Shown here piece by piece: positions 1,861 to 28,576 of a stretch of DNA of 28,576 nt (positions are counted from its first letter, which is position 1; every line of letters starts with the position of its first letter). The notes below the pieces were generated by a model. It worked only from the letters and a program-made list of their open reading frames with translations. It searched no databases and was not told where the DNA came from. The translations under genes were made by a program, and so were the position numbers. Source of the DNA: Paramicrosporidium saccamoebae KSL3 (taxonomy: Eukaryota; Fungi; Cryptomycota); assembly GCA_002794465.1 (NCBI GenBank), contig MTSL01000213.1:1-28576 (forward strand). Reading direction: 5' to 3'.

Positions 1861-1884
1861 TGTACTGATCCGTAGGAAAATTGG

Positions 1885-1910
1885 TTATCCCCAAGGCCCG
1901 CTATGCGACA
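1885..1910 (-). mobile_element. Fragment (left-end module) of dispersed MITE-like element, copy R8
   Basis: Reverse complement TGTCGCATAGCG-ggcctt-GGGGATAA versus family left end TGTCGCGTAGYGGGGATAA. Confidence 0.55.
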
Positions 1911-1913
1911 TCA

Positions 1914-2001
1914 TTTATTGAATGTTTGTTGAATATTTATTGAATGTTTGTTGAATATTTGTTGAGCATTTGTTGGGTATTTGTTGAATATTTATTGAAT
2001 A
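1914..2001. repeat. 11-bp minisatellite x8 (TTTRTTGAATR) overlapping the stop codon of the NEDD1-like gene
   Basis: Units tttattgaatg, tttgttgaata, tttattgaatg, tttgttgaata, tttgttgagca, tttgttgggta, tttgttgaata, tttattgaata. The last unit (1991-2001) contains the minus-strand TAA at 1994-1992. Confidence 0.9.
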
Positions 2002-2731: not shown

Positions 2732-4809
2732 TTATTTTTTATTTTTATTTACTTTTAAAATGGATTCAGTGGGCAAACTTTCCATATTGTACACAATGTC
2801 CTCACGATGATTAAATGTGCTGGGAATCGGGGCAAACTGACTTTTCTGGAGCATACGGTACTTTCGAAACACCAGAAGAGCAATAATTAGGATGAGCAAA
2901 GCAGCGCTAGCGACCAGAGTTGTCATGAGAAGAATTGGCGACGCCTCCACATCATCGCTAGCCACTCCCCGCCCAAGATCCCAAATGCCGTCCTTGTCAT
3001 CAAAGTATTCCGCGTTCGGAGGATAGTAGTTGCGCAGAAACGATTCTGCAAATACTTCATTAGATTCTATGACGTCCTTAGAAAGCGATCCCCAAAAGGA
3101 AATCCGAAAGTTTTCGAGAATCCCAGTGCCAGACGTCTTTGGCGAATTTTTCACCGTCAAGGACCACACACCTTGAATAGGTTCTCCCCAGAACGCCAGT
3201 GTCATCATAGTCCAGTCCCTGAGGCCTTTTGGACTAGTGTCCAAAGGACGACGGGTGGCAAGTGGAATGACAGTGCCGGATGGAGACTTTAGAAAAATTG
3301 TCAAATCCCCACGAGACGAATGCTTGATATTTAGTGTCACTGTGACCTGTTCCAGATTGCTAATATTTTCGAGATGCATGGAACGAATTACATTCTCATC
3401 AATCAAAAACTCTTTGACGGCCTCCTGGGATTTGGAAATTGCCAAATTGCATACAATTCGGGGCATTGACCGGACTGTCATCTTGTCCACGCTTTTCCAT
3501 GTCCTTGCAGCCTCTACAATTTTGTGGGCATCAACTTTGCCAAATCCAAATCTGTAGCTGTAAAGTCGTCCAGCGCCATTTCGGATCCATGAAGAGTCTT
3601 TGGGGCTAAACGAAACTGCAGTTTGTACGCAAATGTACCAAAGGTCCCGCCATGTGAGATTGGGATTGACTGAGAGCGCCAATGCCAAAATTCCCGCAAC
3701 CATGGGGGCTGCCGCCGAAGTCCCCCCATGCTTCAGGGTGCATCGATTGCCTCCGAGGTCTGTTGTTGGGATTTTATAATCCTCGTTGCTACTGTATGCA
3801 GTGACGAGCTGAGCACTGCATGGCTCCATGTACTTGGGCATTTTGTGATTCACATCGATCGCCCCTACAGTCAATGCAAATATTCCGTTTGCATAGCCAT
3901 CATAGTTGCAATTGTCCACCGATTTCCCATTCCCGGCGGCAAAGACATATATGGATCCCTTTCCACCACGACCATTCACAAGCCCATCTATAAAGGAGCG
4001 CAATACCAAAGCGTCGGGAGCGTCAATGGCCTTGCCATCGTCAGCAGGTCCCCAGCTGCAGGAATAAATGTGATTCTCGTGGTATTTGTGCACGACCGCC
4101 GCAGCTTCATTGGTGCTGGACACGGCCATGGACAGAATTCTAATGGCAGAGATTTGTGCCTCGGGACAAATGCCCACTCCGCAGATGCCATTGTCTGGTT
4201 TCGAGACTAACTGCCCGGCGCAGCGGGTTCCGTGGTGATCTCTCAAGGTTGGGTCGGGTACCGGAAGCAACTTTCCAGAGTTAAAGTCATAGGACAGGTC
4301 TTTTCGGAACGCATCCTTCAAATCTGAATGCTCATAGTCCACTCCTACAGAATCAATTCTCCCATGAAATTTGTACCGTCATCGATTAAACTAATCACGA
4401 CGCCCTTGCCCTTAACGCCCTTTTCCCAAACAGGACCAACATTGAGGTCATGTCCCGGTGTCTTCCGATTGAACAAGTACCATTGTTTGGAAAAGAGCGG
4501 ATCATTAAAGACTTTAGTATCTGTGCCCGCCGCCATGCGGGAGCTGAGAGAGTGCGTGCGGACATTATAGAGTGTCTTCTTTCTCTGCTTTAACCACTGA
4601 TACATTGCCACTCGACGCTTCAAGTCGACAACTTGAGCAAAGTCACACAGAATAGAGTGCGGCATCCAGGCCAGCACAGCGCAAGGAAACGAACGCGGGA
4701 GAACAAACTGTTCAGCAAACTCTACCACAACCGACCCGTGCGACAGTAACACATAGCTCAAAAAGAATAGACATGCAACTTTAAGAGACCATGGTACAGC
4801 CAGACGCAT
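2732..4809 (-). CDS. KEX2: Kexin/furin-like subtilisin proprotein convertase, 681 aa, 2 exons (4809-4377, 4344-2732)
   Basis: Signal peptide MRLAVPWSLKVACLFFLSYVLL from the first ATG (4809; the ORF-track start at 4833 is TTG). DPLFSKQWYL; catalytic IDDG|V (joined across a 32-nt intron 4376-4345), HHGTRCAG, GNG and GGTSAAAP; P domain with RGDL; C-terminal transmembrane segment. Confidence 0.95.
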
Positions 4810-4923
4810 AAGCCAGTGCAAGCCGAGATGCAATTTATGGCTTGCGATTCAGCCCCCCGATTTGGAATTTTGATAAATACATTCTTTGTGTGTGTTTAAA
4901 GTTATATTAGTTACCATCAGCTA

Positions 4924-7353: not shown

Positions 7354-7404
7354 TGTGGGAAGATGAGCCAGGGATGAGGTAGATGGTGGATGTCTTGAGA
7401 GCAT

Positions 7405-7530
7405 GTGTGACGTAGAGGCCGAGGCAGAGGATTGATTAGTTGGGTATTTGACGTAGAGGATTGATTAGTTGCTGGGTATTTGAGGGCAGTGAGATGTGTA
7501 TCCATACTATTTATCCCCGCTACGCGACAC
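7405..7530 (-). mobile_element. Dispersed MITE-like element copy R2 (short form, both ends present)
   Basis: Reverse complement GTGTCGCGTAGCGGGGATAAATAGTATGGATACACATCTCACTGCCCTCAAATACCCAGCAACTAATCAATCCTCTACGTCAAATACCCAACTAATCAATCCTCTGCCTCGGCCTCTACGTCACAC. Confidence 0.85.
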
Positions 7531-7745
7531 ATGCATCACAAGATATTCATGTGAAAGGATCAATTATACCATTTTATTGAGACACAAACCTCACACGGAA
7601 TCCCACAGTACACTAATCCACTACTGTGTAACAGATGGACAGTTTTACTTGAATCTCTGCTAATTATTACATTACTCCCGCCTTTCAATTTAACAACCCC
7701 CTAATTCCCTAATCCCCTACTCCCCTAATCCAACTCCCCTCAGTC

Positions 7746-9097: not shown

Positions 9098-11431
9098 ATG
9101 AAGTTGAACAATTTCACGAGTGCTGTCCTTGCGGCCTGCTTCCTGGCCGCGGTGAATGCAGCTTGTACTCTAGACACACTAATCAGTCAACCAGGCGCCT
9201 TTGAAAGCAGCACTACACAGTGCCATCCCTTGGCCACCACACCTAGTCACTCCCCCCACTGGTTTACTGCGATCAGCACCCCAGAACGTAGGCTTGCCTT
9301 TAGTGCTCAGGTCTTTCAACTGGCCAACCCGCCGCAGAGAGGTCATGGAGCGACGGCGGGGCGATACTATCAATCTGCCTTTAATGATGCGGTAAAGAGC
9401 AGCTTGAGAGGCATCAATTCGAACGATGTGGCAGCCTGTCAGCACGACGAATGCTGTCAATTCCTGTCAGATGCTATTCGGGGGATCCCCCAGAACAGCT
9501 TGAAAGCTTTGTCGGTTCGATGCGTCATGCGAATCACCGAGGACGCCAAAAGTGGGACCGCAGGGAGAGATCTAAAGATCCTGAACCTGCTGCCGACTGA
9601 TGTTCTAAAGACCAAGGGCTATGCAATTATCAGACAGCTGTCTGGAGAGGGCGGGATCAAAGTTGTTCCCAGCACAGTGCTTGGCCATATTCTTTCTCAG
9701 CCAGCAGCGTGTCAAGCTCTAAGCAGCGGAGATTGGGCCACACTGCTAACCACCTCCTTAAAGATAGCAAAAGAGTGCCTCCACGCAGGACAAAAGAATT
9801 TCACTAACGCATATGCTCCCGGGGCAAAGACAAGCAAGTTGGACGCAGCAGCGTTTGAGCTCTACAATAGGGATATCCACCGCCAACTAATACCAACTCT
9901 CACCTCTGACCAAGTAATGCACTATGCAGGAAAGGCAGAAGAAGGTCAATTTCCAGGCCACAATTTGGATTTGAATGCACTTGGATCAAACGCAAAAGGT
10001 CTCACTCGTCGTCTGCTCCTGGGCATGACCCATCAGTTCCCGGATTATCGCATGGAATTTTCAAGATCGGCCTGGTCCAAGGTGAGCGAAGACATTTTCA
10101 AGGACCTACCTGCCGACGATGCTGCCGCAATAGCCAATGCTATTAGACCCACAACCCGCGGAGATAGTATTCAGGAGTGGTTGTCAAAGACGCAGCTTGA
10201 GCATTTGGTAGTGCATCACGAAATTTGTAGTGTCCTCCTTCCTGTAACGATGAATCGCAAGATTGCGATTACAAAGGAATGCTTTGCCTCGATGCAACCA
10301 AAGACTCAAGCGGCTGCTCTCGTAAATGGTGGCACACTGCCAAATGACCTCTTGGCGAGTGCCACCGGCGATCAAGTCAGCGCATGGAGCTATAATGGGA
10401 CACAGGGACTAAATTTGCTGGGATTGATACGCAACCGCGAAAATATTTCCAAACTCATCGCTCTGATGGGCGCAAATGTGGAATATGATCATCCCTGCAA
10501 GTTAATCACCGATCTGGACATGCTTAAGGATCTGCCAGTTCTTCAAAAGTTTATGAGTGTCCGTTGTCGTTCCAGAATGGCATTCGAGCTGGAGGCAGAG
10601 GATTATGTTGGACTGGATCCCCGAATGATCTATCTTCAGACATTTGCAGAGATGAAGCGCGTACGCAAGCCCGAGTTCTGGACCGATATGAATTCTTCAA
10701 TCCTCGGCATCCTTATTACCATTGATGGATTTTGCTCGGATATAGACAGTACAACCTTTTCTGGCTTCAAGAAGGATACCTATTCGGCAGTCACTCGCGA
10801 TTGCCTCCGGCAGCTCCCCTATCTTGATGATTTGGCAGCCGATGTGATCCAGAGCATGCCTACCGCTGTATTCGCGAATGATAATGCTAGTACCATTAGT
10901 GCCGCAGTCGTTTCCAAGATGAGCGCTGAGCAGATTGGAATGGTTGGAAACGCAGCCACATCGGGCATTAGTATCGGTGCGCATTTGTCAGAGACTATTC
11001 TTGATAAATTCAGTGCTGCACATTACGGAAAGATTCAGCCCGTCCATTGGAAAGATGTTCCGGCTGGCTCATTCAAGGCAATCTCTACATCGGAGCGACT
11101 TGCCGCAGTTCCCGGCAATTCCATGGTCCACTGGACAAGAACTCAAGTAGGCAACGTCTCCAAAGACCTCTTGGCTGAAATGACCCCCGATCAGGCGGAG
11201 AACATTAGCAGCTCTGCTAGTGTTGCGGATTCGGCTCTTCATGTTCTGACTCCTGATATCAACTTTTGTCCCGAAACAAGGGCCATCATTGAGAGACGCC
11301 GCAAAGAAGCTAATATCACAGTCGGCGATGAAGCCTCTAGCACCACCTTGATCATTATCCTAGTTGTCGGCGTTGCAGCAGCCCTCGCCGCATGTGCTGG
11401 TTTCTACTTTTGGAGACGCAATCATCAGTAA
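9098..11431 (+). CDS. Uncharacterised Cys-patterned type I membrane/surface protein A, 777 aa
   Basis: Intronless ORF with signal peptide MKLNNFTSAVLAACFLAAVNA, a C-terminal TM LIIILVVGVAAALAACAGFYFW and a very short RRNHQ tail. Paralogous to 12070-14451. Confidence 0.9.
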   Translation: MKLNNFTSAVLAACFLAAVNAACTLDTLISQPGAFESSTTQCHPLATTPSHSPHWFTAISTPERRLAFSAQVFQLANPPQRGHGATAGRYYQSAFNDAVKSSLRGINSNDVAACQHDECCQFLSDAIRGIPQNSLKALSVRCVMRITEDAKSGTAGRDLKILNLLPTDVLKTKGYAIIRQLSGEGGIKVVPSTVLGHILSQPAACQALSSGDWATLLTTSLKIAKECLHAGQKNFTNAYAPGAKTSKLDAAAFELYNRDIHRQLIPTLTSDQVMHYAGKAEEGQFPGHNLDLNALGSNAKGLTRRLLLGMTHQFPDYRMEFSRSAWSKVSEDIFKDLPADDAAAIANAIRPTTRGDSIQEWLSKTQLEHLVVHHEICSVLLPVTMNRKIAITKECFASMQPKTQAAALVNGGTLPNDLLASATGDQVSAWSYNGTQGLNLLGLIRNRENISKLIALMGANVEYDHPCKLITDLDMLKDLPVLQKFMSVRCRSRMAFELEAEDYVGLDPRMIYLQTFAEMKRVRKPEFWTDMNSSILGILITIDGFCSDIDSTTFSGFKKDTYSAVTRDCLRQLPYLDDLAADVIQSMPTAVFANDNASTISAAVVSKMSAEQIGMVGNAATSGISIGAHLSETILDKFSAAHYGKIQPVHWKDVPAGSFKAISTSERLAAVPGNSMVHWTRTQVGNVSKDLLAEMTPDQAENISSSASVADSALHVLTPDINFCPETRAIIERRRKEANITVGDEASSTTLIIILVVGVAAALAACAGFYFWRRNHQ

Positions 11432-11606: not shown

Positions 11607-11790
11607 TATTATTGTCGCGTAGTGGGGATAAATAGTATGGACTGGAAGGGGGTCTGTCTACTGCTAGTCCTATAATAGTATGGATACACATCTCACTGTC
11701 CTCAAATACCCAGCTAATCAACACTCTATCACACAAATACCCAACTAATCAATCCTCTGCCTCTGCCTCTGCCTCTACGTCACACTATTA
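11607..11790 (+). mobile_element. Dispersed MITE-like element copy R3 (apparently full length)
   Basis: Left end TATTATTGTCGCGTAGTGGGG and right end CCTCTACGTCACACTATTA. Internal direct repeats AATAGTATGGA x2 and CAAATACCCARCTAATCAA x2, plus a (CCTCTG)n tract. Confidence 0.85.
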
Positions 11791-12069: not shown

Positions 12070-14451
12070 ATGAGACTCTCTGCTGCTGTATTGATCATAA
12101 CTGCAGCGCTTTTGCAGAACACTTCTGCTTCTGCTGTTACCGCACAGACTTACTCTCACAATGGGCCCGCTGCAAAGGCTGCGGTGAGTAAAGACGGAAT
12201 TACCGATTTTGCTGATGATAGTGTGATTAATACGGGATCTCCGCCATTTGACAAACCTGCATCATTACCTCCGCTCGTCTTCCGGGCAATGACTGCTAAC
12301 AATATCATCACGTTTGCCAAATATGGTGCCAAGCATGCTGGTGTCAAGTTGGACCCGAAGACAGACTTGAACAATGCCAATTACAAAAAATTCCTGGCCG
12401 GTATCGGCAGTGAACAAATTCAAGCCTGTACCAACGACCACTGTCTTAGGTGGCTCTACAAAGGCGCCTTTGAGCTCAAACTCGGAGGTTCTCTCAAGGG
12501 AAGGGATGCCTTAAATGGTGTCCAAGTCCGTACGATTGTTGATTCTGCATTTAAAGGTGATTGTCTGAAAGCTACCAATCAAACCCAAACAGTGGAAGCT
12601 GCCTGCGTGAAGGGACAGTTGGATGCCATCCCGGAAAAAGTTAGAAAAGCTTACGCGGCACAGATCATCACAACAGCTGGGGACAATCTCCATTATCTTT
12701 CTGCTGATATGCTCAAATCCGTCTTTTCAGTGGCCTCTGCATGTGAGAAGATTAGAAATGCAGGCAGTTTGAAAGCAATCCTAACTAGCAATAGTCTAGC
12801 AGGCGCAGTTACCGCGGAATGCTTTGCGCATATCCCTCCCGCGGTTATCAATGCAATTCAAGGAGATAGTACAGACGGTGGAGTTACTCAAGCCAAGGTT
12901 AACGTCGCGAGCAAAATTGGATTGTACAAACTATACAATGGTGCACTTCCCAAGCCAATGCTTGAAGGTATTAGCGCTGCGTTGATGAAGGATTTCGCAA
13001 CTGGGTTCGCCAGTGGAGATAGACCTGGTAAAGGTCTCGTTTTGGAGAACATTACCACTAACAACCTGTCGAGTATAAATCAAAAGACACTCTTGGGAAA
13101 CCTCAATGCTAATGATGCTGTCAAGCTGGCTTCAACTGGTAAAAAGCTTACTTTGGCACATTTTGACAAAATTTCTGCTGAAGATGCATATACTGCACTG
13201 AGACACTTTGACCCGACTGCCTTTGGAAATCTAGGTGGTGATATTATTGCTCACATCATGAACGACTACCCGGCCGTCTGCTCACTTCTCCCCGAGACTA
13301 TCGAGTACAAGAATGTCAAGTTGACCAATTCAGATTGTTTCCGCTACTTGGATCCTAAATCTCAGGCAAAAGTGCTTGCAACGGCCGCCAGTGTTCCTGA
13401 CAATGCCCTCGTCCATGTCACGTCTGACATGGTGAAAGGATGGGAATATACGGGGGCTCGCTCAGAGAGTTTCTCTGGTGCCAATGTCTTGGGAGCCAAT
13501 CCGAAACGCCCCAACATTGAAAGCATTATTGCCGGTCTTGGAGTCGATCCCGATGGTCCTAATCCGTGCAAAGATCAAATTCCTTCTGTTACCGACATGG
13601 CTGTAGTCCTGGGTGATAACATAACGTACGCGTGCTTCAAAGAGGGAGAACATGAGATCCCTACCGACAAAGACGCCAAGTTTAGTGAACGCCTCCGTTA
13701 CATGGTGCCTTTCCCGCAGCTATTGAAGGCTCAGGGCATAAAGTTCTTTGAGAATTTGTCAGAGAAAACTTTTGCAACTCTTATGAAGACGGGCACATTC
13801 TGTAGGGGAGTCGATATTGATACTTGGTCCGTGATCAAGCCCGAAATCAAGAAGAATACAAGCTCCAGGTGTCTCGCTGAGCTCATGACCCATCTGTCCC
13901 CCACAGCGGAAGATCTCAAAGGAATGTCTGAAAGCGTCCTCGCAGGTCTTCAGCCTAGTCAGATTCCTGCATCTATGATCCCGTCCTTTAGCAAGGAGCA
14001 ACTCATGGCCGCTGATCCGTCTATTGCTACCATCTTTACCGCCGACACTCTTAAAGCTATCGACGTGACTGCTTTGAACGGTGAATTCTGGGCGAATGTC
14101 TCTCCTGCAGCATTCGGAGGAGTTGCAACGGTTCAAGATATTAAGCCTGAAAACATGACCAAGTGGACTGAGGCTCAGGTCACAAAGGCCTCAGAAGAGG
14201 CCTTTACGCCCCTCACCAAGGAGCAGGCTCAGACTGTTGGCTCCGAAGCTGCAGCTGACGCTTCTCCTGTGAAGGCACTCGTGGCAATGAAGGGAATCTC
14301 TGAAGAAGCTCGCCAAGTCCTCAAGTCACGCTTGAAGGCCGAAGATGCAGCATCGGAAGGAATCCCAACTTGGGTGTTGTTCATCATTGGCGGAGTGATC
14401 GCCGTAGCTCTCATTGGCGGTCTGGTCTACTTTTTTGTTCTTCGCAAGTAG
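12070..14451 (+). CDS. Uncharacterised Cys-patterned type I membrane/surface protein B, 793 aa (paralog of A)
   Basis: First ATG at 12070 gives signal peptide MRLSAAVLIITAALLQNTSA; C-terminal TM WVLFIIGGVIAVALIGGLVYFFVL with RK tail. Collinear conserved blocks with protein A. Confidence 0.9.
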   Translation: MRLSAAVLIITAALLQNTSASAVTAQTYSHNGPAAKAAVSKDGITDFADDSVINTGSPPFDKPASLPPLVFRAMTANNIITFAKYGAKHAGVKLDPKTDLNNANYKKFLAGIGSEQIQACTNDHCLRWLYKGAFELKLGGSLKGRDALNGVQVRTIVDSAFKGDCLKATNQTQTVEAACVKGQLDAIPEKVRKAYAAQIITTAGDNLHYLSADMLKSVFSVASACEKIRNAGSLKAILTSNSLAGAVTAECFAHIPPAVINAIQGDSTDGGVTQAKVNVASKIGLYKLYNGALPKPMLEGISAALMKDFATGFASGDRPGKGLVLENITTNNLSSINQKTLLGNLNANDAVKLASTGKKLTLAHFDKISAEDAYTALRHFDPTAFGNLGGDIIAHIMNDYPAVCSLLPETIEYKNVKLTNSDCFRYLDPKSQAKVLATAASVPDNALVHVTSDMVKGWEYTGARSESFSGANVLGANPKRPNIESIIAGLGVDPDGPNPCKDQIPSVTDMAVVLGDNITYACFKEGEHEIPTDKDAKFSERLRYMVPFPQLLKAQGIKFFENLSEKTFATLMKTGTFCRGVDIDTWSVIKPEIKKNTSSRCLAELMTHLSPTAEDLKGMSESVLAGLQPSQIPASMIPSFSKEQLMAADPSIATIFTADTLKAIDVTALNGEFWANVSPAAFGGVATVQDIKPENMTKWTEAQVTKASEEAFTPLTKEQAQTVGSEAAADASPVKALVAMKGISEEARQVLKSRLKAEDAASEGIPTWVLFIIGGVIAVALIGGLVYFFVLRK

Positions 14452-14792
14452 ATGCTCACCGAATGAATTGTACAGTAAAATGATGTAGATAAATTGAACA
14501 AATAAATGAATGGGGCTGTAAGCGCGAGTCTGGTACGTAAAAGGGTTGTTAAACACGATCCGTTTGTTATTATCGAAGAGTTCGATCCAGATAGCGGTAG
14601 TGTATAAGTGTATAAGCCACACACTACTAAAACTGTAAGAAATACGACCTTGTTGAGCAGTTTCCGCCTGTTATAAAATTGTGAGAGATAGGGCCTTGCT
14701 GAATGGTATCCGCTTATTATGCTACATACTCTAATAAAACTAATTCGCTCATCAACAAGATCATGGCCCAATAAAATGACTATGGATCAACC

Positions 14793-14966
14793 TGTCGCGT
14801 AATGGGTGAATTACTGCAGGCTTTGTCAGACGGAAAGAAATCTTGCCAATTGCTAATCCAACGGCCTAATTCAGGTGAGAAGAAAATTTGCTCACTGCCA
14901 ATCTTGAAATTGCAAGTACACTGATCTCACCATCCACAACTATCCAACAACTAATCAATCATCTGC
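14793..14966 (+). mobile_element. Dispersed MITE-like element copy R7 (diverged, long-spacer subfamily)
   Basis: TGTCGCGTAATGGG left end. 14852-14910 matches 28451-28509 (reverse) at 51/59. Ends in GATCTCACCATCC...CAACAACTAATCAATCATCTGC. Confidence 0.75.
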
Positions 14967-16232: not shown

Positions 16233-16420
16233 TGCATTTTATTTCGTGTAGATGCCAATCTGGAGCCTGTCAGCTTGGACAATATTCTCCCTCAAGGTTC
16301 CCGCCGAAGCCGTCCCACCAAATTCGATTAATTAAATAAATGATTTGTGAGTGGCTTGGGTGGTTGGGGGTTCTGAGGTAGTAGGGGGTTTGAGTAGGCT
16401 GAATGGTGTCCGAGTAGGTT

Positions 16421-16608
16421 GTATCGCGTAGTGGGGATAAATAGTACGGACTGTCAGGCAAGAAAGGGGGGGGGGTTTGTTTACTGCTAATCCTACAATA
16501 GTATGGATATACATCTCATTGTCCTCAAATACCCAGCAACTAGGTCTTCTCCAAACTGGGGAACTATCTTCAAATACCCGACTAATCAATCCTCTACCTC
16601 TACGTCAC
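16421..16608 (+). mobile_element. Dispersed MITE-like element copy R4 (near full length, G11 tract in spacer)
   Basis: TCGCGTAGTGGGGATAAATAGTACGGA...TTTACTGCTAATCCTACAATAGTATGGATATACATCTCATTGTCCTCAAATACCCAGC...CAAATACCCGACTAATCAATCCTCTACCTCTACGTCAC. Confidence 0.85.
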
Positions 16609-16724
16609 GGTTGAATAATATATCATACGTATGGACCAAGGGTAAAATGGGCGTATTACGAAGGAATACACCATGTTATATCAGCAGATACGAAACAACA
16701 GGTCGGTACTACAATACAGGCCCT

Positions 16725-16764
16725 ATACAACCATACAAACATACAAATACACAAATATACAAAC
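16725..16764. repeat. 8-bp tandem repeat x5 (ATACAAAY)
   Basis: atacaacc atacaaac atacaaat acacaaat atacaaac, about 50 nt past the stop of the carotenoid-oxygenase-like gene. Confidence 0.85.
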
Positions 16765-19871: not shown

Positions 19872-19907
19872 TGTGATTTAGAGGATTGATTAGCTGGGTA
19901 TTTGAAG
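19872..19907 (-). mobile_element. Fragment (right-end modules) of dispersed MITE-like element, copy R5
   Basis: Reverse complement CTTCAAATACCCAGCTAATCAATCCTCTAAATCACA. A possible upstream module TTTACTGCAAATT lies near 20043-20055. Confidence 0.7.
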
Positions 19908-20082
19908 ATTGCACCATCTAGTGAGCGGATTCCCTTTTCGTCTCGCTCTGTCTGGCTTGGTCCTTGGTACCTCTCTCATTATGTAACAATCGGATGCACT
20001 GGTCTAAAATACCATCTCCCCTTTTTCATCAACCATTTCCAAATTTGCAGTAAATAATGAATTTATGTTTATGAAAAATTAG

Positions 20083-20265
20083 TTCTTTGCCGACGGTTGT
20101 ATTATTCTTTGCAGACGATTGTATTAATTATTTGCAGACAGTCACATCAATTCTTTGCAAACAGTCACATCAATTATTTGAAAACAGTCACATCAATTAC
20201 TTGCAGACAGTCACATCAATTCTTTGCAGACAATCACCTCAATTCTTCGCCGACGATCGGATTTT
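20083..20265. repeat. 23-bp minisatellite x8 overlapping the USP7 stop codon
   Basis: Core unit TTMTTTGCAGACAGTCACATCAA, contiguous with no spacers. Unit 7 (20220-20242) contains the minus-strand TGA at 20241-20239, and unit 8 lies inside the CDS. Confidence 0.92.
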
Positions 20266-28390: not shown

Positions 28391-28509
28391 GTGTGATGTA
28401 GAGGATCAATTAGTTGGGTATTGCAGGACAATGAGATCTGTATCCTTACGATTTTAAGATTAGCAGTGAACAAGTTTTCTTCTCGCCTAAACTAGGCCGT
28501 TGGATTAAC
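28391..28509 (-). mobile_element. Dispersed MITE-like element copy R6 (long-spacer subfamily, right end present)
   Basis: Reverse complement ...TCACTGCTAATCTTAAAATCGTAAGGATACAGATCTCATTGTCCTGCAATACCCAACTAATTGATCCTCTACATCACAC; 51/59 identity with R7. Confidence 0.8.
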
Positions 28510-28576
28510 GATGAACAATGAACGCTTTCTTTTCATCTCTTCCCACTTGACTTAGTACGTGGTACACCCCCCCCCC

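Follow-up and report, generated by a model that had tools for sequence, protein, structure and literature searches.

Families of MITEs, which are short non-coding elements bounded by terminal inverted repeats (TIRs), have been reported from microsporidia such as Nosema bombycis, members of the same broad parasite lineage as the organism considered here. Ginger-type DNA transposons are rare in fungi, where TG...CA termini combined with a target-site duplication (TSD) of 4-5 bp are the ordinary signature of LTR elements; in fungi and microsporidia alike, such ends most often stem from LTR elements. Termini of the form TGTNR with a TSD of 4-5 bp have been published as characteristic of Ginger1 and Ginger2 as well as of Gypsy LTRs (PMC2836005). 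Ginger1 elements have the TSD CCGG or CCGT in 99% of cases and TIRs of 40-270 bp, and Ginger2/TDD elements have a 4 bp TSD (5 bp in TDD-4 and TDD-5), AT-rich RTATAY targets and TIRs of 50-180 bp; a Ginger2-like vestige has been reported in the fungus Malassezia (Bao, Kapitonov and Jurka 2010, PMC2836005). The IS481EU families, described only from parabasalids, have TGT...ACA termini, TIRs mostly shorter than 50 bp and, in several families, 4-bp TSDs (TSDs of ~15 and ~25 bp also occur), and they include non-autonomous families without a known partner (Kojima 2023, PMC10045372). LTR elements produce TSDs of 3-6 bp (PMC10045372) and end in short inverted repeats, TGTTRNR...YNYAACA, that are conserved over ~7 bp, with AATAAA, a polyadenylation motif inside the LTRs of Metaviridae and retroviruses, as the best-conserved internal LTR motif in Metaviridae (PMC3601003).

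Paramicrosporidium saccamoebae, an intranuclear parasite of amoebae belonging to the Rozellomycota, has a genome (MTSL00000000) with a published repeat share of only 0.53%, mainly simple repeats; the genome paper does not mention transposons and describes no family such as the one reported below, and its supplements make no mention of an integrase, transposase or reverse transcriptase (PMC5701793). The species serves as an example of a streamlined, almost repeat-free parasite genome, of which 76% is genic. Here we report from this genome a family of transposable elements that is real and appears to be undescribed, and whose general kind is known. The window, by which we mean the whole stretch of 28,576 nucleotides that was analysed, comprises bases 1-28576 of the 188,315-bp contig MTSL01000213.1 (assembly GCA_002794465.1), and the products of its ORFs are eukaryotic (USP7, Mad3/BUB1, a kexin-like protease, mitochondrial EF-G, malate dehydrogenase and an RPE65-type oxygenase). 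The family was surveyed over contig bases 1-48563 (48.5 kb) of the 7.3-Mb genome.

Results and discussion

Copies of the family

A repeat search and an nhmmer profile of the window recovered all eight copies that had been listed in a first-pass annotation of this DNA, and extension of the contig to 48.5 kb brought the total to 12 loci (Table 1). These loci, together with the lack of coding capacity described below, bear out the earlier description of a dispersed, non-coding and non-autonomous mobile-element family. For the 19-mer unit and the 18-mer head, ~0.00-0.01 matches would be expected each and 3-4 were found in one 22-kb locus; motif counts so far over expectation exclude chance. Across the 12 loci of the 48.5 kb most elements measure 124-203 bp, with one decayed copy of ~500 bp, and the family makes up ~1.0 kb (3.5%) of the window and ~4% of the 48.5-kb stretch.

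Table 1. Family copies and other features of contig MTSL01000213.1 (window, positions 1-28576; later positions lie beyond it).
Feature	Position	Strand	State and length	Components	Flanks or TSD
Copy A (the copy singled out in the first-pass annotation)	11613-11784	+	complete, 172 bp	in order: head TGTCGCGTAGTGGGGATAA, spacer, core ACTGCTAGTCCTATAATAGTATGGATACACATCTCACTGTCCTC, two CAAATACCCARCTAATCAA units, (CCTCTG)3, tail CCTCTACGTCACA	TTAT 11609-11612, CTAT 11785-11788; 3/4 match
Copy B	7406-7529	-	complete, 124 bp	deletion subfamily; head fused directly to AATAGTATGGATACACATC; two tandem units	CATG 7530-7533, CATG 7402-7405; perfect 4 bp
Copy C	16422-16609	+	complete, 188 bp		GTTG 16418-16421, GTTG 16610-16613; perfect; GGTTG/GGTTG if 5 bp
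Copy D	4930-~5035	+	5' part only	head and core intact	
Copy E	14793-14962	+	diverged	subfamily 2, extra block GCTAATCCAACGGCCTA after head	
Copy F	28392-28576	-		subfamily 2, tail CCTCTACATCACA	
Copy G	19872-19909	-	3' fragment, 38 nt	one unit and tail CCTCTAAATCACA	
Copy H	~1881-1910	-	degenerate head only	TGTCGCATAGCGGG..GGGGATAA	
Copy I	29946	+	beyond window		
Copy J	30496	-	beyond window		
Copy K	~32800-33293	-	~500 bp	internal (GAGAY)n array	
Copy LM	42329-42531 (L123 15212-15414)	+	composite	77-nt 5' part of one subtype, ending ...GCACA, then complete head-to-tail deletion-subtype copy	ACAA/ACAG
Poly-G run	28567-28576			precedes the 141-N gap	
N gap	28577-28717		141 N		
N gap	30126-30376		251 N	1.5 kb further on	
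Tandem arrays, window	1913-2001, 7698-7731, 14628-14720, 16725-16764, 20078-20254				
Tandem arrays, further contig	33107-33262, 35272-35343, 39854-39942				
Kexin-like subtilase, two ORFs	2732-4342, 4345-4833	-			
Tandem genes	9098-11431, 12070-14451	+	777 and 793 aa		

Internal architecture

The modular layout proposed earlier, consisting of head, spacer, core, tandem units, hexamer repeat and tail, was recovered here, and at least three architectures could be distinguished among the 12 loci. The A-type architecture is represented by copies A and C, which share 91% identity over the 67-nt core, and in a variant form by D, I and L. In the deletion architecture, found at two separate loci (copy B and the M half of LM), the head is joined to the second AATAGTATGGA. 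Subfamily 2, which is longer and carries an extra GTTAATCCAACGGCCTA block, comprises copies E, F, J and K, with E and F 78% complementary over 100 nt. Each subfamily was found at more than one locus, and the annotated mixture of subfamilies and decayed copies within a dispersed non-coding family holds. The internal tandem unit is 29-35 bp long, CAAATACCCARCTAATCAATCCTCT(GCCTCT)nACGT, and is present in one to three copies per element, making it a variable-number tandem repeat; the right-end motif CCTCTACGTCA, annotated as the right TIR, also closes every internal tandem unit, at the unit-unit junction.

The two parts of copy LM lie between outer flanks that act as a single TSD, and the locus is either a recombinant or the result of an internal duplication that took in the head. 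Copies I and J, which are inverted around a gap, were considered as a single long-TIR element; this was rejected on account of their differing outer flanks (CACT and AAGA).

Element ends and target-site duplications

The ends were defined from an alignment of seven 5' junctions and six 3' junctions. Mean pairwise identity on the 5' side was 0.28 outside the element and 0.90 inside it, with the jump exactly at the T of TGTCGCG; on the 3' side the last four columns (TCAC) were invariant, five of the six copies retained the final A, and directly past ...CACA identity dropped to 0.28. These sharp homology edges give the element boundaries as 5'-TGTCGCGTAG...CTACGTCACA-3'. The ends had previously been described as GTGT...ACAC, whereas the homology boundary, TGT...ACA, lies one base further in; the left end of copy A, also given as GTGT..., is actually TTGTCGCGTAGTGG, the GTGT form being that of copies B and D, and the proposed 'TAATAGTGT' extension of the ends is flanking DNA outside the element.

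With the refined ends, all four complete copies (A, B, C and LM; Table 1) carry a TSD, of 4 bp or possibly 5 bp. In an unbiased scan of these copies over 648 combinations of offset and length (+/-4 on each side, 2-9 bp), the best scores were 17/20 at 5 bp and 14/16 at 4 bp, the latter exactly at the TG...CA boundaries, and the nominal p for the scan was 1e-7. Control sets, each made of four random intergenic pseudo-elements and scored alike, did not equal this signal in any of 1500 cases (best 1e-5), and the statement that the family had no clear TSD is therefore revised, with the reservation that the support consists of four complete copies, two of which match at just 3 of 4 positions. Copies D, E and K were set aside as sources of TSDs, their 3' ends being too degenerate for use; in copy D, the 3' part of which is degenerate, neither end nor TSD was recognisable.

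The imperfect TIR that had been annotated was found, but in a more modest form. With the comparison anchored at ends that had been defined independently, the 13-base left end, TGTCGCGTAGTGG, and the reverse-complemented 13-base right end, TGTGACGTAGAGG, agree at 10 of 13 positions (p = 2.5e-4), but the repeat is short, no extension of the inverted similarity was found past 13 nt, and unanchored local alignment of the 45-nt ends was not significant (p 0.3-0.9). The inverted repeat appears to be real but is short. A candidate subterminal repeat, between head GGATAAATAGTATGGATA and the reverse complement of unit GGATTGATTAGTTGGGTA, was not supported by shuffling (p 0.13-0.92). Both ends fit TGTNR, as TGTCG and, in the reverse complement of the 3' end, TGTGA.

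The family is probably a mobile element whose copies were put in place by an integrase-like DDE enzyme, the ends and the TSD suggesting this class of enzyme. In the mechanism that we propose, a DDE enzyme resembling retroviral integrases, whose gene lies elsewhere or has been lost, would insert the elements by recognising the conserved ends 5'-TGTCGCGTAGTGG... and ...CCTCTACGTCACA-3' and joining the CA-3' ends to target DNA whose strands are cut 4-5 bp apart; gap repair would then yield the 4-5 bp duplication. The integrase-type end signature narrows the search for a partner to an LTR element or a Ginger/IS481EU-like transposase.

Comparison with Ginger, IS481EU and LTR elements

When compared by published descriptions, the end chemistry of the family is of the integrase type, the full definition of neither Ginger1 nor Ginger2 applies to it, and the fit to LTRs is incomplete. 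The family resembles Ginger1 in its TGTNR termini and 4-bp TSD but differs in the sequences of its TSDs (CATG, GTTG, TTAT/CTAT and ACAA/ACAG) and in its inverted repeat of ~13 bp. Ginger2/TDD elements share the TGTNR termini, the 4-5 bp TSD and the inverted ends, although here too the TIR of ~13 bp is a difference, the TSDs are unlike RTATAY and there is no transposase in the 48.5 kb. With IS481EU the termini, the short inverted repeat and the 4-bp TSD all fit; however, no long TSD occurs among the four copies examined here, and the 48.5 kb again lacks a transposase. At 13 bp, the inverted similarity is longer than the short inverted repeat of LTRs and far below the Ginger TIR.

The annotation of the family as a DNA transposon, or MITE, stood as regards a non-autonomous mobile family, but TG...CA ends with such a TSD also fit solo LTRs; the end and TSD signature is common to retroviral-type integrases, and the MITE reading therefore competes with a second one. 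In this second reading the copies are solo LTRs, left behind when the LTRs of a Ty3/Gypsy-type retrotransposon, itself now extinct or missing from the assembly, recombined with each other; it is the less likely of the two but a serious rival. Like solo LTRs such as the sigma and delta elements of yeast, the copies lie between the genes of a compact genome from the fungal lineage and contain internal tandem repeats; their TG...CA ends are near the consensus TGTTRNR...YNYAACA (PMC3601003) and their TSD of 4-5 bp is inside the LTR range of 3-6 bp (PMC10045372). The body is moreover asymmetric and non-palindromic, TATA-like GATAAATAG and CTATAATAG motifs are present, and the inverted repeat reaches just 10/13 without extension. 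On the other hand, the elements are much shorter (124-203 bp), the propagated 124-bp form being very short for U3-R-U5, neither AATAAA nor ATTAAA is found inside A, B, C or LM, and the end match runs to position 13, past the usual ~7 bp. All 12 loci would need to be in the solo state, with no gag-pol, PBS or PPT remnant beside any of them and no PBS-like TGG or purine tract at their flanks; the 48.5 kb likewise holds no full-length partner or internal remnant, that is, no two direct copies around a PBS, gag-pol and PPT, and the genome paper has almost no complex repeats (PMC5701793).

The propagation of a 124-bp form, the lack of an internal AATAAA, the end similarity beyond 7 bp and the absence of retroelement remnants (0 of 12 loci) favour cut-and-paste transposition over solo LTRs, and on this evidence we regard the chances as about even that the copies are short non-autonomous cut-and-paste elements, namely MITEs with Ginger2- or IS481EU-type end chemistry. 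Standing against the cut-and-paste reading are the lack of any autonomous element or transposase in 48.5 kb of the 7.3-Mb genome and an inverted repeat that is short and imperfect where Ginger TIRs measure 40-270 bp, as well as TSDs that do not resemble the Ginger targets CCGG and RTATAY.

Coding capacity and RNA structure

As had been annotated, the elements have no coding capacity, both by an ORF check and by a protein search with the translated elements. Across the complete elements only one ORF exceeded 90 aa, and it starts in copy C and continues into the flank, while the search with a composite of the translated element reading frames gave no matches. No transposase was found within contig bases 1-48563.

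The pol III A-box has the consensus TRGCNNAGTGG, which the head TCGCGTAGTGG fits save at one position, and copy G is truncated at its 5' side; both would suit a SINE of tRNA origin or a family of genes for structured non-coding RNAs. The candidate for a B-box, however, is poor, ARAGORN found no tRNA, and no Rfam family matched any element even at E <= 5. RNA folding was no better than that of shuffled sequence (z-scores +1.55 and -0.09), and none of 13 consensus pairs showed a compensatory change. With no tRNA, Rfam, fold, covariation or coding signal, a SINE or structured RNA is very unlikely. The simple (hexamer) repeat is furthermore internal and not 3'-terminal, and a fixed short TSD with an end-anchored inverted repeat is unlike target-primed reverse transcription.

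Relatives and metagenomes

A syntenic relative, L124 (Logan SRR12926096_232105, 11,230 bp), has the same gene order across six genes and encodes a DDT-domain protein 52% identical to the downstream DDT-domain protein of the contig. Neither family members nor the head motif occur in L124, which also lacks interspersed repeats of its own. A scan of metagenome DNA with a 25-nt unit pattern gave 0 matches; the 14-specified-base head gave more than 120 single matches, none with a second family motif, and these were rejected as chance. Viral contigs also gave 0 matches, none carrying the unit or head meaningfully. Given its absence from L124, metagenomes and viral contigs, the family appears to be lineage-specific. 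Uncharacterised relatives of Paramicrosporidium saccamoebae exist in public read sets and metagenomes, and P0003 (JGI, a 1186-bp contig) is a relative with 89% protein identity.

Genomic distribution and decay

Within the 26 intergenic gaps of the 48.5 kb, copies occupied 6 of 8 convergent, 5 of 11 tandem and 0 of 7 divergent-promoter gaps, so that 11 of the 19 gaps having a gene 3' end hold a copy; after scaling by gap length without elements, the absence from divergent gaps had p ~0.02. Of 10 heads, 7 have an AATAAA or ATTAAA on their 5' side at a distance of 3-50 nt, and poly(A) signals adjoin tails too (copies G and F). The possibility that AATAAA is part of the element was rejected, both on account of these tail-side signals and because the distance from the head varies. 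An orientation rule placing copies on the same strand as the upstream gene was likewise discarded, convergent gaps being uninformative and tandem gaps holding 4 copies with the gene and 2 against. In a 76%-genic genome, the gap classes, the poly(A) positions and the mixed orientation fit the survival of insertions only just past poly(A) sites, and a host function is not required.

The same gap occupancy and the poly(A) signals near heads, together with a 17-nt head (TCGCGTAGTGGGGATAA) that is identical in 6 copies, could also be explained by a host cis-element downstream of genes, serving 3'-end formation, termination or insulation, held under selection and spread by duplication or conversion. 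We consider this decidedly improbable. TSDs and sharp TG...CA boundaries are unexpected of a regulatory motif cluster, the orientation in tandem gaps is mixed, and poly(A) signals beside tails as well as heads are what would be expected if insertions survive past poly(A) sites. Truncated and head-only copies exist, the family is missing from the syntenic relative, and decay of ~4-6% is alike in head, body and TSD, with no block-specific conservation. More precisely, decay was ~4% in heads and ~6% in TSDs, with ~9% pairwise in the core (A versus C), and its similarity across head, body and TSD fits neutral decay since an earlier burst.

Both N gaps in the 48.5 kb adjoin copies (Table 1), the head side of copy F entering a poly-G run and then the 141-N scaffold gap that starts just past the window; this suggests, without proving it, that copies are frequent enough in the genome to have interrupted its assembly. 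The compact genome setting that had been remarked upon is borne out by published repeats of just 0.53%, a value that sits badly with a high copy number (PMC5701793). In its most extended form, the cut-and-paste reading would make these integrase-type (Ginger/IS481EU-like) MITEs the first in Rozellomycota/Microsporidia, present at about one per 3'-containing gap genome-wide, assembly-breaking and perhaps partly co-opted at gene 3' ends, and this combination we judge unlikely. If it were true, MITEs at about one per 3'-containing gap would amount to several per cent of a genome published as having 0.53% repeats, and should the density in the 48.5 kb be representative of the whole genome, both the repeat content and the earlier transposon activity of the lineage have been underestimated. 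Otherwise the finding is an ordinary one, a new transposable-element family in a little-studied genome.

Neighbouring genes and tandem arrays

A kexin-like subtilase with a P-domain is split over two adjacent ORFs in different frames (Table 1), where the annotation table lists no gene; the split could reflect a short intron, a frameshift, a pseudogene or a sequencing error. The two tandem genes (Table 1) encode proteins that each possess an N-terminal signal-like segment and a C-terminal hydrophobic segment, and the genes show weak mutual DNA similarity (71% over 41 nt). Neither protein has a Pfam domain, and a search of 5.8 billion proteins returned no homologue save themselves; the 793-aa neighbour was accordingly abandoned as a route to paralog loci, its search having matched itself alone. 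The two products look like lineage-specific surface proteins.

Short tandem arrays unrelated to the family, with periods of 5, 8, 10-11, 18, 22-23 and 46 bp, lie at many gene 3' regions of the contig (Table 1). The 11-bp array at 1913-2001, directly 3' of which copy H is situated, contains CAAATACCCAAC. In L124, a (CCCAY)n-like array lies at 276-378, downstream of the orthologous gene, and the lineage may in general carry minisatellites past the 3' ends of its genes.
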